Source: Macrostomum lignano
Lineage: Eukaryota
Length of the DNA: 64,000 nucleotides
Assembly: GCA_002269645.1 (NCBI GenBank)
Contig: NIVC01000109.1
Coordinates: 248,001-312,000 of the forward strand
Direction of reading: 5' to 3'
Within the stretch, counting starts at the first letter, position 1. Each line of letters opens with the position of its first letter. The notes beneath the pieces are model-generated. The model was not told where the DNA came from and searched no databases. It saw only the letters and a list, made by a program, of their open reading frames with translations. This document shows, in pieces, positions 2,421-57,890 of this stretch. A program made the translations under genes and the position numbers.

Positions 2421-18387
<15,967 letters not shown>

Positions 18388-19238: not shown

Positions 19239-28823
<9,585 letters not shown>

Positions 28824-30725: not shown

Positions 30726-33700
30726 TCACTTTAAAGGCCTCTTCAAAGAACGCCCGACTCCTGCAACTTAAATACTCGCAAATTGAAAAAAATGATTGAT
30801 TTACTGAATTGAATTTTAGAAAGTGTCAAATATTTGCGTCCTCACCCAGATTTGGTGGAAAAGATTGTCGGAAAAAAACGATGTCAAGCAGTTTGCTGTT
30901 GAATCCGTTGCTAAGGACGCTAACCTCAGCCTTAAGCCGGTCATTTGTAGTTTCGTGCCGGACGTCGGGTGATTTCACGAGTAAAATGTGCTGGAGGAAC
31001 AGCAGTTGGAAGCATCAAAAGTGAGTAGGCACAGAATTTATGCAGACTCCCAAACCTTATTCAAACTGACCGTACCTTCCTCAGTTCGTGCACGTCGCTA
31101 ACGAAGACAACGCGCTCTCTTTTGATATCGTTGAAGCACGAGAAGTGGACTTTTACTTGACCTTTTTGAATTCCTAAAAAGTTTAAAATATTTTACCTGC
31201 AATTTTAAGTCAATTTTGAGAGTGCCTGGCCTAAAACAAATAGCGACGTTCGATCGTTTCGTAGAATAGATTATTCTCGTACAAATACCCTCGTTGGGTC
31301 TAAAACATTTGGAACTTTGAACATAGTGCTACCATTTCTACTAAAACTTTTCAAGACACTAACTGCCCCGTCCATCTACTACTAGTGGTCCTTGATCAGA
31401 CCTGCGGTGGAGGCCTTAGTGTGGATGGCGATCGTGCAGCCGCCATCCATTGGCGCTTCCGCCGGATTCAACGCGATGACGTCAATGTTCTTCTTTTCCT
31501 CTAAAACACACATTTGTGGAATCATTCTGTACATGAACAGAACAACATGAGTCGATCAGAGTATCACAGAAACTCACTGTCACTGACGATCTTGTCACTA
31601 AACACTGTGCTAAGCAGCCATTCTCGATAGAAAATATCGCAATAGGTGAGCGAGAATGCCAGACGAATCTGAGCCAAGTTGGTCTGGGTGTACTGAGCTG
31701 ACGGCCCTGTAGGACAATCGCTGGGGGTCGGCACATCCCTGAGTCTGGCTTCCATGGCTTTCTCCATGCTCGCTTTGTTCTTCTTTGGCACACAGATCAC
31801 GGACAGCCTGTCGAAGCTGAAAAATTCAAGTGCGTGGGAAACTTCGAGCATGCCTGCAAATCACTATAAGCAACCCTGTACAACTAAACTGGAGCGACTC
31901 TTCCTAGGAAGCCTCAATGTTCAATTCGCTTCACTCCTTAGGAACAAAGCGAGGAGCGTAGCGAACATAGAGGCATCCTTGACTCTTTGCAAATAGTTTC
32001 TTCACTCTAATAGATAAACAACATTTCATTTTAAGTAGAGGCGGGTTGACAGTATATACTAATGCTGATATTGCCAATGAAATGCTAATTCACGACCGTA
32101 GATAGGCTATAATTGACAACAAATTTCATCGTTTCCGAGTCAGTATAAAAAAATATTTCTCTCGAACGAGTTTGTCTATGGTAAAATCCTATTTCCCAAG
32201 CGTAAATGAAAAAAGCTGATCTTTGCGAAATCTGTTTGTTGTTAAATAGGGCTAGCAGCTAAAGCTTGGCGTGCTCTTGAAGAGGCTGGGTGTACCAACT
32301 TTTATTATTTTCACGGCTTGACTCATCGTCAGTCCAGCTTGGTGTACTTGCGGGCGCAAAACTACCCCCCCCCTCAGACAGGGTCGACCGTGGGCTTCCA
32401 AGCTCAACCAGATCAGCACGAACTCCCTAACATGTATTATACATGAGGGCAGCGAACATTTGATCTCACTCCAACGTGCTAAAGTGAGAGCCAGTCGACA
32501 AGCGGTAAACGCACTTCTAGGCTTAGGATCCCCAGAGGCATGATGCCTTTCCAGGCGGTCCATTTACCAGATAGGTTCATCTAGCTCATAGGCAGCTGAT
32601 CTACCTAAATCAACGGTCATCTACCTGAAAAACGGGCAATTGAGTCTCTGGCAGGGACACACTAGAAACTTCAGGGCGAAAACTGTTCCTGTCCCTGAAA
32701 TCTGTTCAGGGAGCACGATTTTGCAGTGGAAACCAGCCCTCCCGTGGCCCAGTCGCTCCTCGTGCCACTCACCAGATGTCCCAAACTGCTTTACCATCCA
32801 ATGCATCAACAGGCTTCTTCAGCTGGAAATATCCGTTACTGCAGTGGTCTCCGTGCAGGTAGTACGGATGAGGAGCATTCTCCTCGGCGCTCACGGTGCA
32901 CACAGTCAGCTGCAGCTGCGAGTGCACAGCTGGGTCGATGTCGCTGACGCGAACTCTCATGAAGCTCTTGTTGCCATCGGTGGAGCTCCTGCCGAGCAGC
33001 AGGCCACCAACTCTGCCGCTGTCCTTCTCGATCTCCGACTCGTAGCGAAATCGGTGATACAGAGCCGGCTGCTCCTCGATGGTCAGCGAAGGCGGCTGCA
33101 ACTCAGCAATGTAGAGGAGCTCAGCAATTCCAGTGTTGACGGGGGGTCCGAGAGGCCCGGAAAAGGTCGATTGATACTAGAAACGTTCATAGAGCAGTTG
33201 TTGTGGTTTTTCATGCACGCTTTGCTAATTTCACATTTTAATTTTTTAGCTTTGTGAAATAATCCACTAATTATAATGCGCTCTGGATGAGGCTTCCATT
33301 CTTGAACCAGCTTCCACTACAGGTCTGCCTGCTTCCACTAAGTTAGAAATATATTGAATACTACTTCTTTTCTGCTCTTTTCTGTGAAAAAACGCAAATG
33401 TAAGGCCAGCAGCAATAACACTGCTTTTGCTGTACGAGATTCCTAACTGACGCTGTTTCTAAAAATAGCTCAGTGCAGTCCCTGTGTGTTCATTTTAAAG
33501 CGCTTTTTTGGCACGGCCAGGGAATTTCCGGGGATTTACTCTCTGCAGATTACAAGGAACTTGCAGCTAACTAATGTTTTAACTTAGATGTCTTTTGTCA
33601 ACCTAAACCAAAATAAGTAGGTTTCATTTCTGATTCCTTACCGAAAAATCAATTTGTATTATCTACAAGAGTCAAGTTAAAACATTACTTTTTGCTCCGG

Positions 33701-34367
33701 CCCTGCTTGGATTCAACCACAGGGACATCAGGGCGGTGATCATGGCCCTCTCAGGCCCTGGCTCCTTTGACAGGCATCGTTATCTTCAGGGAATAGAGAT
33801 CTGCCTCTCCGATGTCGAGAAGGCGAAGCAAGGGCTATCGGGCGAGCGACCATCCACCCTTCTGGACTCTCCAGAGGGGGGCCGCACTGCGGGCACCGGC
33901 ACCACTGGATCTCCTGGCAATCACGCCGCAGCACCAGCTGTCTGTGATTGCCAGGAGCCAGCAGAATGGGCTGCAACGCCTCCTCGCTGTATCCGGCCTC
34001 CCGGAGCCCCCAATGCCCGGAGCTATGTCAAGTTACTTAAAGCTTTCAACTTTTAACTTCAGTTAATAGCTTTCAACAGTTTACTGGAAATATTAATTTT
34101 TTTAGATTTACACAGAGCTACATAAGATTTACACCTGTAAAAAATTTAAAAACTTCATTAAGAAACGTCTTCAAAACCAGTTTTAAATGAAAACTTTTGC
34201 CAAGAAATCAAAATGAATGAGAAGCAATACTTACGATTGTCCACTGGGCCATTGATTATTTATCAAAGCAAACAACAAGGACTTACTAGAATATAACGAA
34301 GTGTTCCTAGTGGTCCTTTACAAACAAATTTTCCTAAACTATCCGATTCACTAGTGTCCATCTCCAT
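30726..34367 (-). CDS. NF-kB/Rel-like protein copy A (RHD + IPT + basic tail, no ankyrin repeats), ~340-366 aa
   Basis: Exons (minus): putative first exon 34367-34287 (MEMDTSES..., uncertain), 33176-32773, 31816-31578, 31500-31402, 31173-31076, 30990-30846, 30760-30726 (TGA). Motifs: LTIEEQP..YHRFRYESE, GLLLGRSSTDGNKSF, PHPYYLHGDHCSNGYF, FDRLSVICVPKK, QIRLAFSL, VFSDKIV, GIQKGQVKVHF, LLVKSPDV, KRPLK-stop. These align by eye with RelA/p50 EQP..RFRYxCE, PHPHELVGKDCRDG, FQNLGIQCVKK, VRLCFQ, VQKDDIEVRF, IVFRTP. Confidence 0.8.
33520..33529. promoter_or_regulatory. Perfect kB-consensus site GGGAATTTCC upstream of the copy A RHD exon
   Basis: Exact match to GGGRNWYYCC. Several degenerate-consensus matches are expected by chance in 64 kb, so function is unproven. 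Confidence 0.25.
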
Positions 34368-34468
34368 GCTAAAATATAATAATAAAACGGATTTTAATCC
34401 GTGGTTGGACCACGGTAAATCCGGGGGAATTCTCGTGGACAAAAGTTGTACGGAGAGACAGAGACGGT

Positions 34469-34688
<220 letters not shown>

Positions 34689-35200
34689 CAAAAAGCGGAC
34701 ACCCGATATGTACACCCGAAAGTAGCTTCCCGACAGAAATAGCACTGTACAGTACAGTATACAGATGCACTGATGCACAGATCAGGGGCTGTTTGTACAG
34801 ATGGAGTTGTGCTTTGAACCGCGGGGAAAGAAAGAAAGCACGACAAATAGTGGCTGGAAGCAAAACTTTTAGGTGAACCAAAACTTGCAGACGAATTTAT
34901 TGTACGGTGGAGGAAAAAGTAAAAGAAAAAAACTGAGCAGCAAACAAGACATCTAGATAGGCTGACCCATCCCACCAAACTCATACTAAATTAGTATTTT
35001 ATTAAGTACTAAATAAACTTCGCTTATGCAAAAACCAAAATCCTATGCATCATTTTTTTCATAGACGCTTGCACATGTACGATCCATGTATAGAGGCTTT
35101 GAATATCAGACTTGAGTCATAATGTTCATAATCAAAGACTGTCTTGAATGAAAGTCAACGCTTATATTTAAGAGCTTGACGTCAGCTGCTTACGTCATCA

Positions 35201-37195
35201 TTATCGTCGCAGCCTCTTCAGAGAAGTTCGGGATTCTGGCAGAAACACAATACAGAGGCTCTCGCTTTTGAATCCGTCGCTATGGACAGTGACCTCGCAT
35301 TTCATCCGGTCCTTGAAACCTGAACTCCTCACATCGGGCGTCCTCACTAGCAAAAAGTGCTGGAAAAAATTAAATTTACTATTAAAAGTGCTCCTGTAAT
35401 GCAGAACATATAAAAGGGTTTGCGTTTACCTTCTTAACCACCTCGACGTCCACCACGAACTCAGTTTGGCTTCCAGTGGCTATATTGGTAACTGCAAAAT
35501 GCACCTTTATGTTACTCCTACAAATGCCTGCAATAGAAGCATTTTAGTTTGAAGGATCAACATTAAATTCAATGTAAAAGTAGCTGAAATATCTTGGATA
35601 GCTTCGAAACAAGGCGCACCTGTTGTAGGGGTGGCGGTGTGGATCGCCAGCATGCTGCCATCCCCCATTAGTACTTCCGTTGGATTCAGACAATCGATCT
35701 CAATTCTCTTTTTTAGATCTGAAATTATTTCGAGATATTGATAAAAAATCATCAACTGAGAGTTGAAGACAGAATCGAGAAACTCACTTTCACCGACGAT
35801 CTCGTCGCTAAACACCGTACTCAGATGCCATTCTCTACCGAAGACATCGCTGAATGAGAGCGAGAACGCCAGACTAATGCGATCCAAGCTTTTGCTTGTG
35901 TATCGAGTTGATGTAGCTGTGGGATCTGAAACAGCACAAAGTTGCCAAAGTTGCAAGCAAAAATTTCTTTTTGATCAAAAACTCTATGTACATCCTTATG
36001 TGACGTGGCACACAAAAGTGGAGGGTCAAACCTCGCGCAGGCACACCGAGACCGAAGGCTTGTTTGCCTTTGTCAGTCAGCAATAGCCACACCCCGTCAT
36101 CTCCCACCACTCTTAGAGCGCACAGACGTTTCTTTAATGCTGCCATTTCTTTTATGGCGACATTTTTCGAGCTATGTCAAGATTTGACGATTTAAATCTT
36201 TATTCGGCTACTTTCCAAAGTAATCTAAATTTAATCTTTAGTTAATAATTAGGAAAGCCACAAGCAGACCAAAAATCAGCCAAAAAGGACTTCAGATTCC
36301 TTTTTTACACCCAGTCTCAACGAAAGGGGCCCAAGAAAAAAAATAGTCAATTTTAAAGTCTCTAAACGAAAAAATGGTGTCACGACACAGCATCTGTTAA
36401 AAAAACCTTTGGTTTAAAAATTAGAGTACTCATTCCTTAGTATATCATTGATTTCTCAGCGAATTCACCAATTCAGAAAGCAAAAATGTCTCACAATCTC
36501 TGAGCTGCGGAAAGCTTCTGCGTCTGTCTTCCAGGCTTTTCTCGATTTCCTTTTTCCTTAACTTTGGCACGCAGATGACAGCCAGTCTGTCAAAGCTGGA
36601 AAATGAGAAATCGTTTTCGTCTTGTATTGTTTAAAATGAAACTACCGGAACTGCTAAAAGAAAAGTGAATATACAACTATATTACGAAAACCATAATTAG
36701 AAGCTTGTTTTAGCTTAGTTTATTGACTCACGTGATCTCCCATTCACCACCAGAATCTCTCAATGCATCAACAGACTTCTTCAGCTGGAAATATCCGTTG
36801 CTGCAGTGGTCCCCGTGCAGGTAGTACGGATGAGGAGCCTTCTCCTCGGCGCTCACGGTGCACACAGTCAGCTGCAGCTGCGAGTGCACAGCTGGGTCGA
36901 TGCCGCTGACGCGAACTCTCACGAAGCTCTTGTTGCCATCGGTGGAGCTCCTGCCGAGCAGCAGGCCGCCAACTCTGCCGCTGTCCATATGGATATCCGA
37001 CTCGTAGCGATATCGGTAGAACCGAACCGGCTGCTCCTCGATGGTCAGCGTCGGCGGCTGCAGCTCCTTCAGGCTGAGGATCTGGGGCTCCTCTTGAAGC
37101 AGAAAGTCTCTGCCAATCACCTGGGTCGTCGTTGCCTTCAAAACGAGTAGAGGCTGGCTTGAACTTTCCATTTTTACATCTCGAAACGTCAGCAT
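35201..37195 (-). CDS. NF-kB/Rel-like protein copy B (RHD + IPT + NLS), ~352 aa
   Basis: Exons (minus): 37195-36732 (in-frame ATG; a further 5' exon is possible), 36595-36495, 35925-35788, 35718-35620, 35527-35430, 35359-35201 (TAA); phases consistent. FYRYRYESD loop, FDRLAVICVPKLRKKEIEKSLEDRR, LDRISLAFSL, LLVRTPDV, ends SLKRLRR-stop. Confidence 0.85.
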
Positions 37196-37899
37196 TGATC
37201 GATGCGTTTCAGCGGCATTAAAAAGTAATCTTGCCTACTTGTTACTGACGATGATGCCGAAGGCATTGTACCAGGGTACCCGCAACACTCCAGCAAATAT
37301 TAATGACATTATCACTGGTAACTCTATCTAATCGTCCTTTCAAATATACATCACATGGTGGCACAGCTACATGTAAGTTATAAACCCTGATAATTAAGTA
37401 GCTGAAGGCCTGTCATGAGTAAGAGTACATTTTTGAATTTTTGAATTTCATAAACCCTAGCCTAGAACAGTTATGCAATATCGAGTCGAAAAAGAGGTCT
37501 GGATAATGCATGACCTGTCTTAGATCACATGAAACAATTAGCTAGCTCTTGGCCAGGTGGAGTATCAACCTGGAAATTGGTTGAAAACTATTATCCAGCT
37601 ATTATATTGGCAGAAAGCAACTCACCATCTTGTCTGTAAATTTCAATAAGAAACAAATTTAATAGATTTCACGAGCAATTGATCTTGATAGTCAGGATAA
37701 GGTACCAAAATGCATTTTATGCCCGCAGGGCGAAGTACCTTGTACGATTGTGAATTGCAGTGTAGTGGCCGTAGGAGCGCACCCCACTGCGAGCCTTTCA
37801 CGAACGCTCGTAGCAAACATTGTCCCTTCTTTCAACTTCTATAAATAAATTTGACGTAAGAATTAAATTCTGGTGTGCACAACAAGTGTGCCGCACGCT

Positions 37900-38570
37900 G
37901 GAAAAATTCTGCCAGAGCAACAAACATAACCGCGGCGCAGACGGGCAGAGGACCACGCTCGCACGCTGCTTGCGGTTCACCTCGGCGGTCTTGTGCCCCA
38001 CGTGAAAGAGGACCTCCGACGGCGCAGAGGACTTGCCTGGGCGGCCTTCCATTCGATTTGGGTCGTCCTCCAGTCCGAAGCGCTGCCCGACCGCCAGAGA
38101 GCTCGGCTGTGGCCTGGCGGTGGTCGAAACCGTCCTGCATACTAAGCCGAGACGTGGACGCTGACGGCTACGCTAATCACGGCTGCTACGCGCGGCCTTT
38201 CGAGCTGTCGAGAGCGTCGGGAAAGAGGCTCTGTACCTCTGTACAGCTTATAGAATTTCGAGTGCAATTTACAGGTGGATTCTGGGCAGCTGCAGCGCCC
38301 GTCCATCATCCATCATCCATCATCATCGGCAACTTCAACTTGCGGGCCACGTGATCCAGTCCGAGGGCTACTGCCCCCAACCTGTTCAGGACGCCCTGCT
38401 GCACATCTTGCAGGGCCCGTTCAGGCAGGCTCAGGCCCAAACCCGCCGATACATGAACGTGGACTGCTTGCTGTGCGACGCAGGGGCACCCGACACTGCC
38501 AAAGGGGCGGACTTTCGAATTCCGCTCTCAAGCTCTGCGGCGCGCCATCTGACGCACCCTCACTGTGACC
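37900..38570 (+). mobile_element. Degenerate RTE-type non-LTR retrotransposon fragment (RT C-terminal region)
   Basis: Frameshifted translation LGGLVPHVKEDLRRRRGLAWAAF..VLQSEALPDRQRARL..VVETVL...ETWTLTATL and RQLQLAGHVIQSEGYCPQPVQDALL...RY..VDCLLCDAG, the pattern of RTE/LINE ORF2 ends. Confidence 0.7.
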
Positions 38571-39198
38571 TTACATGCGGGGCCGCGAATTTATCTCCAT
38601 CAGCATCACTATTGGAATTATCCCTGCATCACCACAGGGATCTCCATCAGCATCACCATTGGAATTAACCCTGCATCACTATTGGGATCTCTTTTGCCGA
38701 AAAAGAAATTAAACCGAAATTCACTCGAACTTTATTGAAGGATCGATTGATTGATTGATCGAACTTGATTGATTTACCACTACTTGATTGATTGAAGGAT
38801 TGAAGGAAATCCTGGCTATAAGATTTGTGTTGGGTAGTGGTAAATAAGCCTGTCATAAAACAGAAGAAGGATTGATTTTTCGTGATAGCGCTTTCTTTAG
38901 AAAATCGGCACAATCGAACTCACGATGGTCAAATTTACGATCAAATTAATACACGAGCCATTGATACATGAGTCATGCAGAAAATCTTTAGGCAGAAAGA
39001 ACATCTCCGTGATTTCGAACCAGTGCAAAATAATATTATAATAAGAATATTAAAAACCTGTTTATTAACTATTAAAAAACTTTAAAGGCTAAAAGCCTAC
39101 TGAGAAACAAAACACTTTTTTCGCAGCTTATAGAATTTCGAGTGCAATTTACAGGTGGATTCTGGGCAGTTACACAAAGCTTCAGCTCATTAGCTGTG

Positions 39199-40911
39199 TC
39201 AAATTGGCCGCGCTCTCTTCACAGCAGTTCCGGATTCTGCAACAATCCAAAAGTGTGTTGAAAAATAAATTTTAAAGCTCGCAAAGGAAAAACTAAATGT
39301 TTGCTAACTTTGAAACTTTCTTAAAAACATAACGTGGAGGTGTTCCGGTGTTCCACTTAAAGCTGTTGGGCAGATCTCTTAGAAACACAATGCTCCGCTC
39401 CTCACTCTTCCATTCATGGCTGTGGACAACAACCAAACATTTCTGCCGTTCATTGACAGTTGCGTTCCTCAAATCGGGAGTCCTCACAAGCAGTAGATGC
39501 TGGAAATTAAACGTGTCAAAAGGAATTAAAATTACACAACTTAAGCAACGAATGAACACTAGCTACATCTTCATAAAATAGTCCTTTCTGTACTATTTAG
39601 ATACGAGCGTAGAAGCTAAGCATATTACCTTTTTAACTTCTTTGACATCGGCAACGAACTCAGTTCGGTTTCCCGTGGTTTCATTGGTGACAATGAAATG
39701 TACCTTTATGTCACTCTTCTGAATGCCTGAAATTCGAACAGTAGGAATCACGGTATTTATTTTGTGCGAGAATTTCAGCAGAAAATTAGTTATTAAATAG
39801 TGTTGAAACCGAGCGCACCTGTTGTAGGGGTGCTGGTGTGAATCGCCAACATGCTGCCGCCCTCCTTTGGCACTTCCGCTGGGTTCACACAATCGACCTG
39901 AATAAGCTTTATTTCCTCTAAAAATTGTGAAACGCATTAACTAATAACCAATATTGACTGAGAGTTCAGAACGAAACTGAGACACTCACTCTTACTGACG
40001 ATCGGGTCGCTGAACACAGTGCTCAGCTGCCCTTCTCTACCAAAGAAATCGACGAATGAGAGCGAGAACGCCAGTCGAATGCGACCCAAGTTTTTGGTTG
40101 TGTATTGAGTTGATGGAGCTGTGGGACCTGAAACAGCGCCAAATTTTTATGTGAGCTTCATTAAATTGGACTTCAACGGCGAAAACGAGACGATATTAAA
40201 AGATAAATGCTCACAATTTGGAAGCTGAGGAACATTTCTGCGTCTGGCTTCCATGTGGTCATCGATGTGCTTCTTTGTGGTTTGAGAGACAGCCAGTCTC
40301 TCAAAGCTGAAGAGTCAATCATGAATTTTCGCTGCTTTAATTCGAGAATAAAACTGACTGTACACTCAAGTTCGACAATTAATAAATTAAATGTTGTCAC
40401 CGAAAAATATTGAACTGACGTTTCATGTGTCACCATGAATTTTTACTCACGTGATCTCCCATTCACCACCAGAATCTCCCAATGCATCAACAGACTTCTT
40501 CAGCTGGAAATATCCGTTGCTGCAGTGGTCCCCGTGCAGGTAGTACGGATGAGGAGCCTTCTCCTCGGCGCTCACGGTGCACACAGTCAGCTGCAGCTGC
40601 GAGTGCACAGCTGGGTCGATGCCGCTGACGCGAACTCTCACGAAGCTCTTGTTGCCATCGGTGGAGCTCCTGCCGAGCAGCAGGCGGCCAAGGTGGTAGC
40701 TTGCTTGCTGAGACTCGTAGCGAAATCCGTAGAACCGAGCCGGCTGCTCCTCGATGGTCAGCGACGGCGGCTGCGGCTCTTTCAGGCTGAGGATCTGGGG
40801 CTCCGCTTGAAGCAGAAAGTCTCTGCCAATCACCTGAGTTTCGTCTGAAGCTGCTACAGTTCCAGAATATTCGCAGTACTCCACTTCACTTGCTACGATT
40901 TCATTTAGAAG
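39199..40911 (-). CDS. NF-kB/Rel-like protein copy C (RHD + IPT + NLS), at least 363 aa; start codon exon not resolved
   Basis: Exons (minus): 40911-40451, 40306-40215, 40127-39990, 39917-39819, 39726-39629, 39499-39334, 39236-39199 (TGA); all phases consistent. FYGFRYESQ loop, FERLAVSQTTKK, LGRIRLAFSL, VFSDPIV, GIQKSDIKVHF, LLLVRTPDL, VKRARPI-stop. Confidence 0.85.
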
Positions 40912-42164
40912 CTAAAATCGAATCGGTAAGATCGGAAAGAGTGTTGTTTTTCGACCAGGGTAATAACCCACCTTTATTAAAATTTACAGCAAAACTTCTA
41001 TTTTTACGTGGTGGCAATATTAAACAGAGCCAAAGTTGCAGATAAGATGGCTTGATTTAATGGATTGCCTTCTTGAAAAGAACTGATGCCCGGCATTGCG
41101 CCAGGGTACCAAAACCCCTCCTGTGTACATTTATTACCATGGTAGCTCTATCTAATCGTCCTTTCAGATGCATATACGTACAAAGTACATCGCATGGTGG
41201 CACAGCTAAGCTATAAATCCTGATAATTCAATAGCTGAAGGCCTGTCACAAGTGTGCGAAGGAGGATCAGTGTGAAGCTTTGACAGTGTGAAGCTTCTGA
41301 ATTCTAGTAACCCTAGAAAATGTCAAGCTTTTTCATGTAGCAAATGAGGTCTGGATAACGCATGACCTTGTCCAGGGACTACTCAAACACTACTCAAACA
41401 TGTTTGAGTAGTCCCTGACCTTGTCTTGGGAAATCACATGAAATAATTAGCTAGCTCTTGGGCAGGAGAAGTATCAACTTGGAAAAGTTTCTTTAAAATT
41501 TTTAAAGCTATTAGTTTGGCAGGAAGCAACTCACCATTTTGGGCTCGTAAATTTTAAGTTTGGCTTTGATAGTTAGGATAAGGTACCAAAGATGAATCTT
41601 TATGCCCTCAAGGCGAAGTAAGTACCTTGTGCGAGCTACCATTGAGTGTACGAGTGTGAATGTGCAGTGTACTGGCCAGAGCAGCGCGCCACTTCTATAA
41701 ATAATCTTGACGTAAAAATTAAACTTCGATTTGCACATGTGTGCCGTACGTAGGACACTTAGTTACGAGATGAGCAAACAAAAATAACGAATTTGTGCAT
41801 ACTTCTTGTATATTTCTTCCATGCAATTCAACCCAGAAGCGTCATAATTTTTGTAGGAGAGAATATTATGAGAATATTATAAATTTTACCAGCAACTTAA
41901 TACACGAATGCTGGCAATTGCTACTCACAAAATATTTTAGGCAAAAAACGGCTCAATGATTTAGGCAACAATAAGTTCCAATCTACGAGAAATGGAACCA
42001 ACGAAAATATGCAATAATGAGAGTGTTAATAGTCAGCTCATTTATTATTTGAAAAATTCAAGTCATCAAAGCAATTTTTCATGGCTTTTAAACTTTCGGA
42101 AACGAGTGCAATTTACAGGCGGATTCTGGGCAGTTTCACGAAGCCTTCAGTTCATCAGGAAATG

Positions 42165-42954
42165 TCAACTTGGCGGCGCTCTCTTCACAGCAATTCCGGA
42201 TTCTGCAACAATCCAAGAGTGTATTTAATAATTAATTTAAAAACTCGCGAAGAATAAAGCACAATTTTTCTAACTTAAAATTTTCTTGAAGCATAAGAAC
42301 GTACTTGGCGGTGTTTCGGGGTTCCTCTTAGAGCTGTTGGGCAGATCTGTTTCAAACTGAATGTTGAGCTTTTCACTCTTCCCTCCGTGGCTGTGAACAA
42401 CTACGAAGCCTTTAAGTCGTTCATTGGCAGTTGCGCACCTCACGTCGGGTATCTCCACCTTCAGTAGGTGCTGGAAGTCAAACGTGTCAAGAGCATTTTA
42501 CAATTTAACTACTTGTCGGTGACAGACAAGGAAAACGCCAGACAGTAACAACATCAACTGGTAAATTGAAAAGCACGTGAAGGCATTTAAAGTTTCATTA
42601 CTAAAGGATCTTGCGAAGCCTATACGAGCGTAATAGTCAGGCAAAATTTTTCTTTATGTACTGGAAGATAAGCATATTACCTTTTTAACTTCTTTCACGT
42701 CGGCAACGAACTTAGTTTCTGTGGCTTCATTGATGACCGTAAAATGAACCTTGATGTCACTCTTCTGAATTCCTGAAATTCAAATAGCGTGTTTAGCAGC
42801 ATGTATTTAGCGTGATTGATTAATTCAGTTGAGATAGTTTTGAAACCGAGCGCACCTGTTGTAGGGGTGCTAGTGTGGATCGCCAGCATGCTTCTGCCCT
42901 CCATTAGCACTGTTGCTGGGTTCAGACAATCGACCTTAATAGTCTTATTTTCTT
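42165..42954 (-). pseudogene. NF-kB/Rel-like copy D: IPT and NLS exons only; RHD exons absent where the Helitron array begins
   Basis: Exons 42954-42856, 42772-42681, 42470-42305, 42202-42165 are open and orthologous to the last four exons of copy C (GIQKSDIKVHF, HLLKVEIPDV, VKRAPPS-stop). No RHD exon is recognisable between 42954 and the Helitron end at 43292. Confidence 0.75.
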
Positions 42955-43354
42955 CTGAAAAAGATGAAACGCATTGACTAATGGTAGATTCTATATATGG
43001 TTTAATTACTTGAATAATGATTACAGTCACAAGTGGCGAAGCTTAATAAGCTCACTTTATAGCATAGTTTATAGCGTTGTTAATGCTCAAACAGAAACGA
43101 TAATTTTTATGACCATGCACTAGTGTATATGGGTTCATAATTGAATAATGATCAGCAGCCACACTATTAAGTAACGCGATGTTTTTTTGCACCATAGACA
43201 AATTTTCTACTGCCAGCGGCTTGGTTGATTTAGGAAAAACATTGGATTACGGGGCGTTTAGTTATACCATAGGCTAAAGATCAGTGAATAACTAGCAATC
43301 CGGCCCGTTCAGGGAGTGCGAAAATGAAAATGAAAATATTTCTAAAATATTAAA

Positions 43355-44320
43355 GAATAGACCCATGCTTCCAGTAAGCCTTGATGTCTCAGTAACTCCC
43401 CCAGCTAAGCCTTGAAGTCTAAGAAATTTCCCCACTAAGACTTGACATCACAGCAATTCCCTTAGCTGCAAGCCTTGACATCTCAGCAATTCCCCTAGTA
43501 AGCCTTGACATCTCAACAATCTCCCCGTAAGCCTTGACATCCAGTGATTCCCCCTGTAAGCCTGGACATCTCAGTAATTCTCCATAAGCCTTGAAATCTC
43601 AGCAATTCCCCCAGTTGTAAGCCTTGAAATCTCAGCGATTCCCCCAGCAATAAGCCTTGACATGCATCTCAGCAATTCCCCCAGCTGTAAGCCTTGACAT
43701 CTTAGCAATTCCTCCCAGTTGTAAGCCTTGACATCCCAGCAATTCCCCCAGTTGTAAGACTTGACATCTTAGCAATTCCTCCTAGTTGTAAGCCTTGACA
43801 TCCCAGCAATTCCTTCAGCTGTAAGCCTGTCATGGTCTTAGGTCTTTAGTCTTAGCAATTCCTCCCAGCTATAAGCCTTGACATCTCAGCAATTCCCCCA
43901 GCTATAAGCCTTGACATCCCAGCAATTCTCCCAGCTGTAAGCCTGGACATCTCAGCAATTCTTCCAGCTGTTAGCTTTGACGTCTTAGCAATTCCCCTAG
44001 TTGTAAGCCTTGACATCCCAGCAATTCTCCCAGCTGTAAGCTTCGACGTCTTAGCAATTCCCCAAGTTGTAAGCCTTGACATCCCAGCAATTCTCCCAGC
44101 TGTAAGCTTTGACATCTTATCAATACCCCCAGCTGTAAGCCTTGACGTCTTAGCAATTCCCCCAGCTGTAATCCTTGACATCCCAGCAATTCCCTCAGCT
44201 TGTAAGTCCTGAAAAAGACATCTTAGCAATGCTCCCAGTAACCCTTGGCATCTCAACAATCCCCCATAAGCCTTGACATCTCAGCAGTTCTCCCAGTAAG
44301 TCTTGACATCTTCGCAATTT
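43355..44320. repeat. ~30-33 bp minisatellite GTAAGCCTTGACATCTCAGCAATTCCCCCA(GCT) inside H1
   Basis: About 30 copies. Confidence 0.95.
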
Positions 44321-44439
44321 CCCTATGAATTTTTTGTTTTACAAGATGCTTCGTTTGTGCTTGAAATTATGCCTCTTTTATGTTTAGCATGATGCTTTTT
44401 CACATCACATGGTGGTCCTTTTTGTAAGCTTTAATCATG

Positions 44440-46019: not shown

Positions 46020-47950
46020 TTCCCAAGACAGCAAGTATCCCTCCAGATAGCAAGCACCCCCTCCAAAAGTAAGCAACAACAGATAGCAAGCATCCCTTAG
46101 TACACGTAGCAAGCTTCACCCCAGATAGCAAGCAACCTGCACATAGCAAGCATCGCAAGATACTGTAGAAGCATCCACCCAGATAGCAAGCATCCTGCAG
46201 ATAGCAAGAATCCCTGAATAGCAAGCATCCCTGGATAGAAAGAATCCCATACATGTAGCCAAGCTTATCAAGTGCTGTAATCCTTGGTTTGCTAAGTGCA
46301 ATAATCCTTGGCTTATCAAGAGCAATAATCCTTTGCTTATCAAGTGCAGTTATCCTTGGTTTATCAAGTGCAGTAATCCTTGGTTTATCGAGTGCAGTAA
46401 TCCTAGGTTTGCCAAGTGCAATAATCCTTGGCTTATTAAGAGCGATATGTCTTGGTTTATCAAGTGCAGTAATCCTTGGTTTATCGAGTGCAGTAATCCT
46501 AGGTTTGCCAAGTGCAATAATCCTTGGCTTATCAAGCGCAGTAATCCTTGGCTTATCAAGCGCAGTAATCCTTGGTTTATTAAGAGCAATAATCCTTGGT
46601 TTATCAAGTGCAGTAATCCTTGGTTTGCTAAGTACAAAAATCCTTAGCTTATTAAGAGCAATAATCCTTGGCTTATTAGGAGCAGTAATCCTTGGTTTGC
46701 CAAGTGAAATTACCCTTAGCTTATTAAGAGCAATAATCCTTGGTTTATCAAGTGCAATAATCCTTAGCTTATTAAGAGCGATAATTCTTGGTTTATCAAG
46801 TGCAGTAATCCTTTGCCTATCAAGCGCAGTAATCCTTGGTTTATTAAGAGCAATAATCCTTGGTTTATCAAGAGCAATAATCCTTGGCTTATCAAGAGCG
46901 ATTTGTCTTGGTTTATCAAGTGCAGTAATCCTTGGTTTGCCAAGTACAAAAATCCTTAGCTTATTAAGAGCAATAATCCTTGGCTTATTAGGAGCAGTAA
47001 TCCTTGGTTTGCCAAGTGCAATATCCCTTAGCTTATTAAGAGCGATAATTCTTGGTTTATCAAGCGCAGTAATCCTTGATTTGCCAAGCGCAGTAATCCT
47101 TGGTTTATCAAGTGCAGTAATCCTTGGTTTGCCAAGTGCAATAATCCTTAGCTTGTTAAGAGCGATAATCCTTGGTTTATCAAGTGCAGTAGGTTTATCA
47201 AGTGCAGTAGGTTTATCAAGTGCAGTAATCCTTGGTTTGCCAAGTGCAAAAATCCTTAGCTTATTAAGAGCAATTATCCTTGGCTTATAAAGAGCAATAA
47301 TCCTGGGTTTATCAAGTGCTATAATCTTTGGTTTATCAAGTGCAGTAATCCTTGGTTTATTGAGAGCAATTATCCTTAGCTTATTAAAAGCGATAATTCT
47401 TGGCTTATCAAGTTCAGTAATCCTTGGCTTATCAAGCGCAGTAATCCTTGGTTTATTAAGAGCAATAATCATTGGTTTATCAAGTGCAGTAATCTTTGGT
47501 TTATTACGAGCAATAATCCTTGGTTTATCAAGTGCAGTAATCCTTGGCTTATTAAGAGCAATAATCCTTGGTTTATCAAGTGCAATAATCCTTGGTTTAT
47601 CAAGTGCATTAATCCTTGGTTTATCAAGAGCAAAAATTCTTGGTTTATCGAGTGCAGTAATCCTTTGCCTATCAAGTGCAGTAATCCTTGATTTGCCAAG
47701 CGCAGTAATCCTTGGTTTATCAAGTGCAGTAGGTTTATCAAGTGCAGTAATCCTTGGCCTATTAAGCGAAATAATCCTTAGCTTATTATGAGAAATAATC
47801 CTTGGCTTATTAAGAGCAGTAATCCTTGGTTTGCAAGTGCAATAATCCTTGGTTTATCAAGTGCAGTAATCCTTGGTTTATTAAGAGCAATAATCCTTGG
47901 TTTATCAAGTGCAGTAATCCTTGGCTAATCAAGTGCAGTAATCCCTGGTT
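46020..47950. repeat. 18 bp (GATAGCAAGCATCCCCCA) then 24 bp (TATCAAGTGCAGTAATCCTTGGTT) minisatellites inside H2
   Basis: 18-mer ~46020-46250; 24-mer ~46260-47950, about 70 copies. Confidence 0.95.
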
Positions 47951-48006
47951 TATCAAACACGGTGATCTAAAGGTTTTTAATTAGTCTTTTAATAAAAGCT
48001 TTCAAT

Positions 48007-48701: not shown

Positions 48702-51700
48702 CTAGCAATCTTCGCCCCCCGATGGGGGACATCTGGATAGAATCCTTGTTCTTTACAAATAAGAAATAGACCGCGAAATAAAGCCTTCATAAAAAACAAC
48801 AGACATTCCCTCTAAAAAAACATCCCAAGACAGCAAGCATCCTCAGACAGCATTCAAGCATCGATGCCCAGATAGCAAGCATCCCCCAGACCGCCAGCAA
48901 CCCCTGATAGCAAGCATAACCTGGATACAAATGGTCCTGATAGATAGCTAGCAACCGCCTCTCAGGTACCCTCCACCTCCCAAGGGCAAGCATCTCCCAA
49001 TAGCAAGCATCCCCCAGATAGCAAGCATTCCCCAGATAGCAAGCATTTCCCAGATAGCAAGCATCCCCAAGATAGCAAGCATCCCCCAGATAGCAAGCAT
49101 CCCCCAGATAGCAAGCATACCTTATATAGCAAGCATCCCCCAGATAGCAAGAATCCCTCAGATAGCAAGCATCCCCCAGATCGCAAGCATCCCCCAGACC
49201 GCAAAATACCCCAGATAGCAAGCATAACCTGGATACAAAGAGACCTTATGGATATCTAGCAACCCCCTCTCAGAGAGCATCTCCCAATAGCCAGTTACCC
49301 CAGTAGCAAGCATCCTTCCGATAGCAAGCATCCCCCCAATAGCAAGCATCCCTCGGATAGCAAGCATCCCCCTGATAGCAAGCATCCCCCTGATAGCAAG
49401 CATCCCCCTGATAGCAAGCATCCCCCTGATAGCAAGTATCCATCCTTAAAAGCAAGCATCCACTAGAGAACAAGTAGCTAGTGCAACAATTTTCTTAGCT
49501 TTATAGTGGCTCCATTTCGTTTGGCATGACACTTCTTTTTATGTTTAAAACGGTGTCTCTTTTATGTTTGCAATGGTGTCTCTTTAATGTTTGACATGGT
49601 GGCTCTTCTTTGTTTGACATGGTGTCTCTTTTATGTTTGACATGGAATCACCTATATGTTTGACAAGGTGGCGCTTTAATGTTTTACATGGAGTCAGTCA
49701 CGTATATGTTTGACATGGTGGCTCTTTTATGTTTGATATGTAGGCTCTTTACTGTTCGACATGGTGGCTCTTTTATGTTTGGCATGGTGGCGCTTTTATG
49801 TTTCACATGGTGGCTCTTTATTGTTCGACAAGGTGGCTCTTTAATGTTCGACATGGTGGCTCTTTTATGTTTGGCATGGTGGCTCTTTCATGTTTGACAT
49901 GATAGTTCTTTTATGTTTGACATGATAGCTCCTATATGTTTGACATGGTAGGTCTTTATTGTTTAACATGGTAGCTCTTTTATGTTTCACTCAGTGGCTC
50001 TTTAATGTTCGATATGGTGGCTCTTTAATGTTCGACATGGTGGCTCTTTTATGTTTGGCATGGTGGCTCTTTAACGTTCGACATGGTGGCTCTTTTATGT
50101 TCGACATGGTGGCTCTTGAATGTTTGACATAGCGGCTCTTAAATGCTTGACATGGTAGGTCTTTTATGTTTGACTTGGTGGCTCTTTAATGTTTGACATG
50201 GTGGCTCTTTTATGTTTGGCATGGTGGCTCTTTCATGTTTGACATGATAGCCTCTTTCATGTTTGACATGGTAGGTTTCTAATGTTCGACATGGTGGCTC
50301 TTTAATGTTCGCCACGTTTGTTTTCAGGTTTTTCATGTTTGAGTCACGTATATGTTTGACATGGTGGCTCTTTAATGTTCGCCACGTTTGTTTTCAGGTT
50401 TTTCATGTTTGAGTCACGTATATGTTTGACATGGTGGCTCTTTATTGTTTGACATGGTGGCTCTTTAATGTTTGATATGGTGGCTCTTTTAGGTTTGTCA
50501 TGGTACCAAATAAAGCCTTTACAACAAACATTTAAGAGCCACCATGTCAAACATATATGTGACTTTATGTTAAACATTAAAGAGCCACCATTAAGAAAAT
50601 AAATCTGGCATGATGTTAAACGTTAAAGTGCCACCATATCGAAAATTAAAGAGCCACCATGTCTAACAGTAAAGAGCCACCATGTCGAACATCAAAGGGC
50701 CACCATGTAGAACATTAAAGAGCCACCATGTCGAGCATTAAAGAGCCACCATGTCAAACATAAATCTTGCATGATGTCAAACATTAAAGTGCCACCATAT
50801 CGAACATTAAAGAGCCACCATGTCTAACAGTAAAGAGCCACCATGTCGAACATTAAAGGGCCACCATGTCTAATATTAAAGAGCCACCATGTCAAACATT
50901 GAAGAACCACCATGTCGAACATTAAAGAGCCACCATGTCAAAAATAGAAGAGCCACCATGTCAAACATAGAAGAGCCACCATGTCTAACATTAAAGAGCC
51001 ACCATGTCGAACATTAAAGAGCCACCATGTCTAATATTAAAGAGCCACCATGTCTAACAGTAAAAAGCCACCATGTCGCCTGCTATCTGGGGGTGCTTGC
51101 TATTTGGGAGAGCCTGCTATCTGGGGGTGCTTGCTATTTGGGAGAGCCTGCTATCTGGGGGTGCTTGCTATCTGGTGGTGCTTGCTATCTGGGGGTGCTT
51201 GCTATCTGGAGGTGCTTGCAATCTGGGGTGCTTGCTATCTGGGGGTGCCTGCTATCTGGGGGTGCCTGCTATCTGGGGGTGCTTGCTATCTGGGGGGTGC
51301 CTGCTATCTGGGGGGTGCTTGCTATCTGGGGGTGCCTGCTATCTGGGGGGTGCTTGCTATCTGGAGGTGCTTGCTATCTGAGGGGATGCTTGCTGTCTTA
51401 GGATGTTTTCTTTTTACATTGCACTTCATCTGAGCAGTTTTTCTATTGACTATGTGAAGGCTTTGTTTGGCCATCTTATTGATACTTGTAGAGAACAGAG
51501 ATTCTATCCAGATGTCCCCCATCGGGGGGCGAAGATTGCTAGTCCTTCCTATATACTAAAAATGAGTTGTCTGTATGTGGGTAGGTATGCGATAGATTTC
51601 AGAAAAAATGACATAATCAATTTCTCAGTCAGCCAGTATCAGTCTCAATTTAAGTTAGCAATATGGTTACGCAATTTAAATCAAGTCGTTTGTGCATTTC

Positions 51701-52009
51701 TTTGGCACTGTTTTCAACTTTTTGTGATGCAATCTTTATCAAAATCGGACTTCAGCCAGTCAGTTTTTTCTCTAGCATTCTTACAATGCATTTCAGGTCG
51801 AAAGAGCTGCTTGACCTTTGCAAAAAATCATGTTTTTCGAATATTTAATCCCTTTAAAATTGAGCAATTTCTTAGCCAAGATGCATGTACCGTTCCAGGA
51901 AAATTTCTGATCAAATGGTGCAAGTTTGAATAAAATCGGTTGAGCCATTTTTTCTGAAATCTATCGCATACCTACCCATATACAGACAACTCATTTTTAG
52001 TATATAGGA
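48702..52009 (-). mobile_element. Non-autonomous Helitron H3, interrupted by an inverted Helitron segment (~50520-51604, +)
   Basis: 3' end GATGTCCCCCATCGGGGGGCGAAGATTGCTAG (CTAG 48702-48705); 5' end TCCTATATACTAAAAATGAG at 52009. The same 3'/5' junction occurs on the + strand at 51511-51604 (CTAG 51539-51542). Confidence 0.75.
48820..51395. repeat. 18 bp and 22-23 bp (ATGTTTGACATGGTGGCTCTTTT) minisatellites in both orientations
   Basis: 18-mer 48820-49470; 23-mer 49550-50500; reverse 23-mer 50530-51075; reverse 18-mer 51078-51395. Confidence 0.95.
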
Positions 52010-52154
52010 CTAGCAATCTTCGCCCCCCGATGGGGGACATCTGGATAGAATCTCTGTTCTCTACAAGTAACAAAAAGACAGCCAAAAAATCCTTCACAAA
52101 GACAACAGACAAACTGCTCAAATGAAGTGAATTGCAATAAGAAATCTTCCCAAG

Positions 52155-55100: not shown

Positions 55101-55830
55101 GGTGGCTCTTTTAGGTTTGAAATGGTGGCTCTTTAATGTTCTACATGGTAACTCTTTTATGTTTGATACGGTGGCTTTTTAATGTCTGACATGTTGTCTC
55201 TTTTATGTTTGACATGGTGGCTCTTTTATGTTCGACATGGTGGCTCTTTAATGTTCGACATGGTGGCTCCTTTAGGTTTGAAATGGTGGCTCTTTAATGT
55301 TTGACATTGTGGCTCTTTTATGTTCGACATGGTGGCTCTTTTAGGTTTGACATGGTGGCTCTTAAATGTTCGACATGGTGGCTCTTTAATGTTTCACATG
55401 GTGGCTCTTTAATATTTGACATAAAGTCACATATATGTTTGACATGGTGGCTCCTAAATGTTTGACATGGTGGCTCTTTATGTTTGACATGGTGGCTCTT
55501 TTATGTTCGACATGGTGGATCTTTTTTGTTCTACATGGTAACTTTTTTATGTTTGATACGGTGGCTTTTTAATGTCTGACATGTTGGCTCTTTTATGTTT
55601 GACATAGTGGCTCTTTAATGTTCGAAATGGTGGCTCTTTAATGTTCGAAATGGTGGCTGTTTTATGTTTGACATGGTGGCTCTTTTATGTTTGACATGGT
55701 GGCTCTTAAATGTTTGACATGGTGGCTCTTTAATGTTCGACATGGTAGCTCTTTAATGTTCGACATGGTAGCTCTTTTATGTTTGACATGGTAACTCTTT
55801 TATGTTCGATATGTTGGCTCTTCTATGTTT
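52155..55830. repeat. 18 bp array (52155-52730) and ~3 kb 22-23 bp array (52830-55830) inside H4
   Basis: Direct reading. Confidence 0.95.
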
Positions 55831-55886
55831 GACATTGCGCTTCTTTGATGTTTAGCAGTTTTGTTGTGTTTTTAAGGTGTTTTAAT

Positions 55887-57369: not shown

Positions 57370-57890
57370 GTGAATTCGTCACTCTCAAAATTTATGACTC
57401 ATAATTTGTCTCTCATAATTTATCACTCTCATAATTCGTCACACTCAATATGACATCCTGAATTTTGCACCCTCATAAGTATTATCGCTCTCAAATTTGT
57501 CACTCATAATTTTTCACTCCCTCTCATGATTAACCACTCCTTCTCATAATTTTTCACCCACTCGCTCCCATAATTTGTCACTCACTCTCATAATTTGTCA
57601 CTCACTCTCATAATTTGTCACTTACTCTCATAATTTGTCACTCACTCTCATAATTTGTCACTCACTCTCATAATTTTTCACTTACTCTCATAATTTGTCA
57701 TTTATTCTCATAATTTGTCACTCACTCTCATAATTTGTCACTCACTCTCATAATTTTTCACTTACTCTCATAATTTGTCATTTATTCTCATAATTTGTCA
57801 CTTACTCTCATAATTTGTCTCTCACTCTCATAATTTTTCTCTCACTCTCATAATTTATCACTCACTCTTATAATATGTCACTCATATTAT
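57370..57890. repeat. 20 bp minisatellite CTCACTCTCATAATTTGTCA in the Helitron 3' region
   Basis: About 20 or more copies. Confidence 0.95.

Follow-up and report, generated by a model that had tools for sequence, protein, structure and literature searches.

Interlocus conversion between tandem duplicates, with mosaic tracts as its result, is well described for the human G-gamma/A-gamma globin genes and for the human RHD/RHCE gene pair. In the primate opsin genes OPN1LW/OPN1MW, conversion homogenizes the sequence but leaves the spectral-tuning sites different, and both the functional effect and the selection have been demonstrated. As a mechanism, conversion among tandem paralogs is textbook material and not new. 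Among Rel/NF-kB proteins, RHD-only NF-kB-like paralogs have been found in choanoflagellates, for example three heterodimerizing proteins in Acanthoeca spectabilis (bioRxiv 10.1101/2021.03.15.435342), and planarian workers have found clear NF-kB homologs hard to identify in flatworms (PMC13563047). In this study, we analyzed a 64,000-nucleotide stretch of the Macrostomum lignano genome (assembly GCA_002269645.1, contig NIVC01000109.1, positions 248,001 to 312,000; hereafter the window), which holds part of a larger tandem array of M. lignano-specific small Rel/NF-kB-like genes. Among the papers searched, none described an RHD-only Rel-like family of M. lignano. Our results indicate that array-wide concerted evolution of the core of the RHD exon by gene conversion, with retained loop islands in two of the genes (B and C), is very probable.

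The window sequence was of eukaryotic type, with GT-AG introns and microsatellites, and carried the array in the order D-C-B-A on the minus strand at approximately 3.8 kb per unit, as three intact genes (A, B, and C) and one 5'-truncated copy (D). As comparison DNA, approximately 47 kb of NIVC01000475.1, two stretches of NIVC01000109.1, and one of NIVC01001505.1 were fetched around annotated relatives (contigs 475, 109, and 1505 below; L001, L003, and L006 denote stretches of contigs 475, 109, and 1505, respectively), and coding models of the relatives were built by exact-match exon chaining and exon-by-exon projection. Tandem arrays on these contigs contained 17 further RHD exons, giving 20 aligned copies together with those of the window, and the array content amounted to approximately seven paralog types in at least three array versions. 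The A-B-C region of the window was collinear with contigs 475 and 1505, with 94-98% identity in non-coding DNA. The window, contig 475, and contig 1505 thus each supply one orthologous version of the A, B, and C genes, an arrangement that fits the documented neopolyploidy of M. lignano (PMC10733133, PMC5704211).

In the alignment of the 20 copies, the segment from approximately PPSLTIEEQP to VDAL was nearly invariant in nucleotides, including in the P8-type genes, which were otherwise the most diverged, with a pS (proportion of synonymous differences) of 0.8 outside it. This GC-rich segment of approximately 200-300 bp corresponds approximately to residues 19-105 of p65, namely loop L1 and the first half of the N-terminal Ig-like domain. 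The segments concerned in the window genes were as follows.

32799-33002 (A), 36761-36964 (B), and 40480-40683 (C), minus strand: homogenized core of 68 codons (LLLGRSS...VDAL), with 0 differences between B and C and 6 in each of the pairs A-B and A-C
36726-36966 (B) and 40445-40685 (C), minus strand: near-identical B-C tract, beginning at the loop's 3' edge and reaching as far as the last base of the donor GTGAGT
33003-33065, minus strand: L1 loop of A (ALYHRFRYESEIEKDSGRVGG), consensus except LYH for RFY; the same loop in the contig 475 ortholog of A
36965-37027, minus strand: L1 loop island of B (VRFYRYRYESDIHMDSGRVGG), 6 nt off the consensus, all nonsynonymous
40684-40740, minus strand: L1 loop island of C (ARFYGFRYESQQASYHLGR), with the first Arg of RxRY replaced by Gly and the Glu by Gln, two codons shorter than the array consensus

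Synonymous divergence (dS) in the core of the window genes was 0 for B-C and 0.044 for both A-B and A-C, and the corresponding downstream values for B-C, A-B, and A-C were 0.55, 1.19, and 1.35. The same contrast was obtained for 14 genes as the proportion of synonymous differences (pS): in the 68-codon core, pS was 0.046 between paralogs (maximum, 0.118) and 0.026 between orthologs, versus 0.512 (maximum, 0.80) and 0.062, respectively, in the downstream exons. In seven pairs, namely B-C, A-B, A-C, B-P8, and C-P8, together with the B-C pair of contig 475 and that of contig 1505, the longest identical run exceeded those of all permutations (10,000/10,000). At core positions 1-186, seven of the nine informative sites had a minor allele scattered over several ortholog groups without covering them, and all four gametes were present in 25 of the 91 core site pairs. 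The nearest neighbor of a gene was its ortholog in 12 of 12 cases when the downstream exons were used and in 4 of 12 when the core was used; the core of the window B was identical with that of the window C, while the latter differed from the C cores of contigs 475 and 1505. Because core variants are shared among paralogs against orthology, as seen in the four-gamete failures and the 4 of 12 neighbors, the core of the RHD exon is subject to recurrent interlocus gene conversion. The donors vary between events: in the C gene of contig 475, the core finished on its 3' side with a P7-type patch (QRNKSVDS) and had a B/P8-like 5' end. In the RHD exon, the GC content at third codon positions (GC3) was 72-73%, compared with 48-60% for the remaining exons of B and C, and rare core variants were mostly changes from G/C to A/T (16 versus 4); both features fit the expectation for long-term GC-biased conversion. 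Gene conversion, which a preliminary description of this DNA had proposed from the near identity of B and C, was thus strongly supported, but as a family-wide process involving approximately 20 copies and at least three array versions, of which B-C is only one instance.

We considered whether an overlapping element could fix the nucleotides of the core without any exchange; candidates would be an antisense open reading frame (ORF), a structured RNA, a site targeted by small RNAs, or a splicing or regulatory code. An antisense ORF was indeed open across the exon in A, B, and C, and the core segment is unusually GC-rich. However, such an element would not account for variable core sites that are common to paralogs against orthology and fail the four-gamete test, nor for orthologs that differ at sites where paralogs agree, and neither a credible Rfam match on the core nor a Pfam domain in the antisense ORFs was detected. 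Furthermore, the homologous segment evolves freely in related M. lignano genes outside the array. Amino-acid identity within a second M. lignano RHD clade was 42% in the core and 29% in the rest of the protein, and that of the dispersed relative P0071 with array members was 54% and 34%, respectively, whereas the array member P8 showed 93% identity with other members in the core and 48% in the rest. Within the array, identity in the core was 93-94%. Since the same segment shows 42% and 54% identity in the non-array relatives, the invariance of the core is not an intrinsic constraint. The residual differences in the core had a roughly neutral ratio of nonsynonymous to synonymous changes. An overlapping element is therefore largely refuted, and we regard it as extremely improbable.

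False identity could also have arisen as an assembly or polishing artefact, if reads of one paralog had been used to correct another. M. lignano is a neopolyploid with a repeat-rich genome that is difficult to assemble (PMC10733133), and the B-C identity in the window (1 difference in 236 nt) is above that in contig 475 (approximately 7 differences) and contig 1505 (approximately 10). On the other hand, an artefact would neither spare the loop islands nor produce sharp and reproducible borders. Moreover, assembly collapse cannot explain the pattern, because the mosaic recurs with private variants in three contigs and approximately 20 copies and is also present in protein models of an older, independent assembly (P0009). 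As an account of the whole pattern the artefact is very unlikely; at most, it inflates the final B-C step in the window from approximately 97% to 99.6% identity.

Between B 36731-36966 and C 40450-40685, a single mismatch was present in 236 nt, at 36760 (T versus C), in agreement with the preliminary description. A sliding-window comparison (60 nt) over the whole B and C regions gave 93, 73, 88, 100, 100, and 98% identity along the RHD exon, compared with 62-87% in the other exons, while most of the intron sequence was below 50% or unalignable. None of the 48 synonymous sites in the core differed, versus a pS of 0.39 downstream, where the exons were 74.7% identical (dS, 0.55; nonsynonymous divergence, dN, 0.25) and hence diverged, as had been reported. 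In a GENECONV-type permutation check, the longest identical coding run of B and C was 206 nt, versus a maximum of 69 in 10,000 permutations. Upstream of the loop, similarity between B and C picked up again to 93%, as also noted before, and the upstream flanks of the two genes were partly alignable (approximately 71%), which corrects that description.

At the 3' side, B-C identity halted at the donor site; beyond it, only the GTGAGT consensus was shared, and the sequences were then 45-53% identical or unalignable. The B-C tract ends at the donor because the intron of B is unrelated to that of C. The stop at the donor, which had been described before, holds for this pair but not for A, whose similarity to B and C ends at 32798, approximately 25 nt before the donor. 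Similarly, the term exon-bounded is appropriate for the 3' border of the B-C tract but not elsewhere, as the A and P8 tracts break off within the exon, 25-40 nt short of its edge. In contig 475, the C' gene carries B-like sequence approximately 450 nt into the upstream intron; C-group paralogs are approximately 90% similar in the intron, and the RHD exon of C reaches approximately 70 nt 5' of its homology with B. Judging from these alignments, the ends of the tracts follow the limits of homology and not exon borders as such. A B-C homology that starts exactly at a shared acceptor was rejected: the B acceptor is at 37135 and the homology runs from 37126, and the exon of C extends to 40911, approximately 70 nt past the homology.

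The variable segment that interrupts the homogenized region aligned with loop L1 of RelB and p65 (RGMRFRYECEGRSAGS), with an insertion of 3-5 residues. The loop peptides of A, B, and C were exactly those given in the preliminary description, with a 6-nt deletion in C, and the base contacts that it had ascribed to this loop in NF-kB were borne out by the alignment with the p65/RelB motif RFRYxCE: in p65, Arg33, Arg35, Tyr36, Cys38, and Glu39 hydrogen-bond DNA (PMC9223357). Most paralogs share the consensus loop ARFYRFRYESEIEKDSGRVGG. The loop of B differs from it by F>Y, E>D, E>H/R, and K>M (6 nt in 63), and the B-type loop was also found in the B orthologs of contigs 475 and 1505, with R in place of H. 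In C, the changes from the consensus are R>G, E>Q, the loss of two codons, and approximately 27 nt of unrelated sequence; this loop was identical in the C orthologs of contigs 475 and 1505, and a related form (QRRNSYELGR) was present in the gene 109_c. Accordingly, the R-x-R-Y-x-x-E motif was complete in A and the consensus paralogs (RFRYESE), carried Asp for Glu in B (RYRYESD), and lacked the first Arg and the Glu in C (GFRYESQ). Because the loop types are the same across the three orthologous versions, the loop islands persisted while both of their flanks were exchanged. The divergence of the loop that had been described is thus true of B, C, and three residues of A, and these types recur unchanged in the three orthologous array versions; most paralogs, however, keep the consensus loop. 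The loop of C had the same length as that of the non-array relatives and also their Leu before Gly. Since the lengths match, the two-residue insertion is derived in the consensus loop and has spread through the array, and the C loop more probably represents an ancient allele spared from overwriting than a new diversification.

One explanation of these islands is that conversion homogenizes the scaffold while selection actively maintains or diversifies L1, so that B, C, and the consensus paralogs read different DNA sites. All three orthologous array versions retain the B-type loop and the C-type loop though both flanks were exchanged, and all of the B-specific changes (6/6) are nonsynonymous. 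C lacks the two residues equivalent to the base-contacting Arg33 and Glu39 of p65, and B has Asp in place of the Glu (PMC9223357). Among paralogs, the proportion of nonsynonymous differences (pN) was 0.177 in the loop versus 0.034 in the core; pS in the loop was 0.143. In addition, the few scattered point changes of B should be a weak physical barrier to conversion and should not block heteroduplex formation, which makes selection more plausible for B than for C. However, the consensus loop is common to most paralogs, so the loop is not generally hypervariable; the loop of C has the ancestral length and is probably old; and dN/dS of the loop was 0.7-1.5, calculated on 18-21 codons with few synonymous sites. 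In reliably aligned lineages, a rough tally of apparently independent events gave approximately 17 nonsynonymous to 3 synonymous changes, which is near the neutral expectation of approximately 78:22, and the changes are therefore indistinguishable from neutrality. The view of a uniform scaffold with diversifying specificity that had been put forward from the sequence was consequently sustained for the core but only partly for diversification, as the dN/dS check of the loop gave approximately 1. Selection for new DNA specificity of the loops, particularly that of B, remains plausible on these data, and we consider active selection on L1 a tenable account, although short of an even chance.

Alternatively, the islands may be passive relics, in which local heterology stops or reverses the heteroduplex and the loops drift neutrally or under relaxed constraint, with C maybe being a weak or non-canonical DNA binder. 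Local heterology is offered both by C (the indel and approximately 50% mismatch) and by B (a cluster of mismatches). The divergence of the C loop (dS, 0.27-0.61; dN, 0.41-0.44) is at the background of the unconverted exons, a dN/dS of approximately 1 is compatible with drift, and two canonical base-contact residues are lost in C. Other tract ends also meet a loss of homology, namely the unrelated intron of B and the divergent exon tails of A and P8. Against a purely mechanical origin, approximately 100 nt on the 5' side of the island are also homogenized, which requires either very short independent tracts or spanning tracts with the island restored; the B loop was kept in all three versions with only 6 scattered mismatches in 63 nt; and the ORFs are intact, with a downstream pN/pS of approximately 0.5-0.6. 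We hold passive persistence to be a serious candidate, also somewhat less than an even bet, and the mechanical explanation and selection are about equally likely for the loop islands. A further proposal, in which the islands are protected by selection and the Rel factors share a conversion-maintained body for mutual dimerization or partner compatibility but read different half-sites (consensus, B, and C types), seems rather unlikely. If true, the array would provide a combinatorial Rel code, and this in a phylum whose clear NF-kB homologs have proved difficult to find.

From these results, we propose that short, patchy, non-allelic conversion with various donors repeatedly overwrites the core of approximately 200-300 bp in all array members, so that the core stays near-identical in every copy and the remaining parts of the genes keep their old divergence. 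The 235/236 identity of B and C would be the freshest conversion tract. Its 3' end falls at the donor, where B-C homology ends, and its 5' end at the heterologous island of 30-60 bp encoding loop L1. The islands carry paralog-specific B and C alleles that survived in three array versions despite the exchange of both flanks, and their persistence may reflect either selection for different DNA specificity or heterology that blocks or restores the heteroduplex.

Several points weigh against this proposal. Consensus polishing may have overstated part of the most recent B-C event (1/236). A single core site, AAG versus AAT, specifically favors a B-to-C transfer in the lineage of the window over one in the ancestor shared with contig 475, and a very recent window-specific B-to-C event was downgraded as it depends on this single diagnostic site. 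The tests run did not explain the confinement of conversion to the core segment, and they identified no hotspot motif. The AlphaFold2 model, for which the input was a 7-sequence alignment, was poor over the whole N-terminal domain (predicted local distance difference test, pLDDT, below 50); it was unusable for loop geometry. Finally, the 5' end of C is a prediction from a sequence model, and that of A was sought but not found.

The gene models of the window were as follows.

30726-33104, minus strand: gene A, RHD-only Rel-like; exons 32773-33104 (RHD), 31578-31816, 31402-31500, 31076-31173, 30846-30990, and 30726-30760
35201-37628, minus strand: gene B; ATG mini-exon 37626-37628 (donor GTGAGT), RHD exon 36732-37135, then 36495-36595, 35788-35925, 35620-35718, 35430-35527, and 35201-35359 (stop)
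39199-41537, minus strand: gene C; ATG mini-exon 41535-41537, RHD exon 40451-40911 (acceptor TTTTAG followed by CTTCTAAAT), then 40215-40306, 39990-40127, 39819-39917, 39629-39726, 39334-39499, and 39199-39236
42282-42961, minus strand: copy D; dimerization-domain exons only (equivalents of exons 4-6)

The spliced ORF of gene A was open over six exons and approximately 97% identical to UniRef A0A1I8HPJ5, and its ortholog on L001 was intact; the first exon, the 5' limit of the RHD exon, and the start codon of A were sought in the window but not found. Gene B encodes 333 amino acids in an ATG-only mini-exon followed by six exons. The annotated ortholog BOX15_Mlig012767g1 (P0003) has the same architecture; it is 97% identical to B, and its exons could be placed exactly on L001. 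The sequence ATGGTGAGT occurred only twice in the window, once upstream of B and once upstream of C. For gene C, the spliced model with the ATG of mini-exon 41535-41537 (followed by the donor GTGAGT) joined to the acceptor at 40911 was open over 363 amino acids and eight exons, and this mini-exon is the predicted first exon of C; orthologs of C were found on L001 and L006. Copy D, detected by tblastn, was most similar to C (77-78% by self-BLAST), and an upstream RHD-N exon was absent, so that D is a 5'-truncated fragment. Its counterpart on contig 475 (X, L001:1721-5700) still has the RHD exon and the MQ...STQA first exon. In the window, minisatellites replace the sequence 5' of D, which marks this version of the array as truncated or rearranged.

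The genes also differed in intron content. A region that is one exon in A (31578-31816) is split by an intron in B (36495-36595 and 35788-35925) and C (40215-40306 and 39990-40127), and the last intron, present in A and C, is absent in B (35201-35359 in B versus 39334-39499 and 39199-39236 in C). Two alternative first exons occur in the family, the ATG-only mini-exon (B, C, and P8) and a 42-codon exon, MQ...PMIAATSTQA (P4-P7, X, 109_c, and 109_f); first-exon sites are at 41529-41537 and 37620-37628 on the minus strand of the window and at L001:1363, L004:10001, L004:20386, L006:6544, and L006:12001, among others. As a rule, the long first exon is followed by an RHD exon with a 5' extension; the C genes of the window and contig 1505 keep this extension but begin with the mini-exon. 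Exon 2 of the contig 1505 C gene (L006:17045-17147) was 11 nt longer than that of the window C and resembled the P5/P6/P7 type (FERLAVICVIRKTKKDIEDG), and the projection was frameshifted there; either the patch stems from conversion and the frameshift is real, which would make the gene a pseudogene in contig 1505, or the projection misplaced the exon boundary. The P8-type genes on contigs 475 and 109 (L004:1746-6933 versus L002:10001-15632) had identical coding sequences (pS 0), while the downstream arrays differed in gene content, which suggests a very recent segmental copy or haplotig overlap. Immediately after their stop codons, C and D carry an element of 46-51 nt (39124-39174 and 42103-42133), and a solitary copy between C and B (38244-38294) may be what is left of the 3' end of an array member that was lost.

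Database searches returned as close relatives only M. lignano proteins named "RHD domain-containing protein". Since a deep HMMER search matched solely M. lignano proteins down to an E-value of approximately 1e-17, followed by insect Dorsal-like proteins at approximately 1e-7, the family is a lineage-specific Rel-like expansion. The Pfam profile RHD_DNA_bind (PF00554) matched A, B, and C with 60.7, 49.4, and 50.4 bits, respectively (gathering cutoff, 27; profile positions 1-166/169; E-values of 2e-16 for A and 3e-13 for C), and exon-only queries of the three genes were also above the gathering score. The nearest solved structures by sequence were RelB, p65, and c-Rel. In the C-terminal domain, the Pfam RHD_dimer match was weak and below the cutoff (E-value of 0.018 in C). 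The AlphaFold2 model of this domain had a pLDDT of 76-91 and superposed on Rel dimerization domains with template-modeling (TM) scores of 0.77-0.80; it matched the C-terminal Rel homology region of NFAT1 (TM 0.80, 2.7 A) as well as the dimerization domains of p50, p65, and RelB, and the best 50 structural matches all belonged to the Rel family. The model thus identifies a predicted C-terminal IPT/TIG dimerization domain of the Rel type, and the family members presumably act as DNA-binding dimers. No Pfam ankyrin domain was found in the A, B, and C models, whose proteins end 10-25 residues past the IPT domain, which separates them from class I NF-kB proteins of the p100/p105/Relish type. A basic KR-rich tail (KRLRR, KRARPI, or KRPLK) ends the proteins, with no sequence beyond it. 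M. lignano has a second clustered clade of RHD-only genes and dispersed relatives on other contigs (P0011, P0013, P0015, P0016, P0021, P0022, and P0071), which have the L1 motif [YH]HRFRYE[SKT]E and no homogenized core; because these exist beside the array, the species has dozens of Rel-like genes.

Elsewhere in the window, minisatellite arrays with periods of 17-33 nt were located at 2725-3232, 10688-12746, 14176-18297, 24673-26048, 43374-44323, 46265-47956, 48986-55853, and 57503-57884, one array of 23-nt units being approximately 3 kb long. The 24-nt and 23-nt minisatellite families recur at the flanks of the contig 109 RHD array (L003, 18.8-22.5 kb). Long (GA)n microsatellites were present at 34478-34685, between A and B, and at 21660-21743. 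The intergenic GC-rich ORFs between the paralogs gave no Pfam matches. A perfect kB-consensus site (GGGAATTTCC) lies at 33520-33529 on the plus strand, approximately 430 nt upstream of the RHD exon of A, and is directly followed by GGGGATTTAC (to 33539). Autoregulation of A through this site was not retained as a candidate, since the window shows no enrichment of the motif, with 3 occurrences versus 5.1 expected, and the site may be there by chance.

The locus is an unusually clean natural example of a function-defining island left unconverted inside a short conversion tract, with three orthologous versions as internal controls, and can be used to study tract limits and the balance between selection and homogenization. 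It also exposes a large lineage-specific RHD-only Rel-like expansion in M. lignano, with a second cluster in addition. In practical terms, trees or ortholog calls based on the RHD exon will be wrong in this family, and short-read mapping, RNA interference, or in situ probes directed at the core will strike every paralog.

Compared with the known systems, the array resembles the gamma-globin and RHD/RHCE pairs in having one block that is near-identical including its synonymous sites, an old remainder, sharp borders, and variants common to paralogs; it differs from them in comprising approximately seven paralog types in at least three versions, in its tract of approximately 200-300 bp within one exon, and in the unconverted island that this tract encloses. 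The homogenized flanks around a few function-defining residues that resist conversion recall the red and green opsins, which was the pattern proposed in the preliminary description. Unlike in the opsins, most paralogs of the M. lignano array share the same loop, and both a functional effect of the retained residues and selection on them are putative. With the class II NF-kB/Rel proteins (RelA/p65, RelB, c-Rel, and Dorsal), the family shares the RHD N-terminal domain, the Rel-type dimerization fold, a basic tail resembling a nuclear localization signal, and, in A and the consensus paralogs, the RxRYxxE motif of L1. However, identity to class II Rel proteins is only approximately 20-30%, L1 is followed by a 3-5-residue insertion, Ser replaces the redox Cys (RFRYESE), two base-contact residues are missing in C, and the proteins are short (approximately 315-450 residues), with no recognizable transactivation domain, ankyrin repeats, or glycine-rich region (GRR). 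The M. lignano proteins are therefore RHD family members nearest to class II Rel, but highly divergent, RHD-only, and with an extended L1. Their nearest architectural analogues are the choanoflagellate RHD-only paralogs, in which short proteins without ankyrin repeats have likewise multiplied in a lineage-specific manner. Those paralogs belong to another lineage and no tandem-array conversion mosaic has been reported for them, whereas the M. lignano proteins, which are putative dimerizing DNA binders, are encoded in an array that bears such a mosaic.

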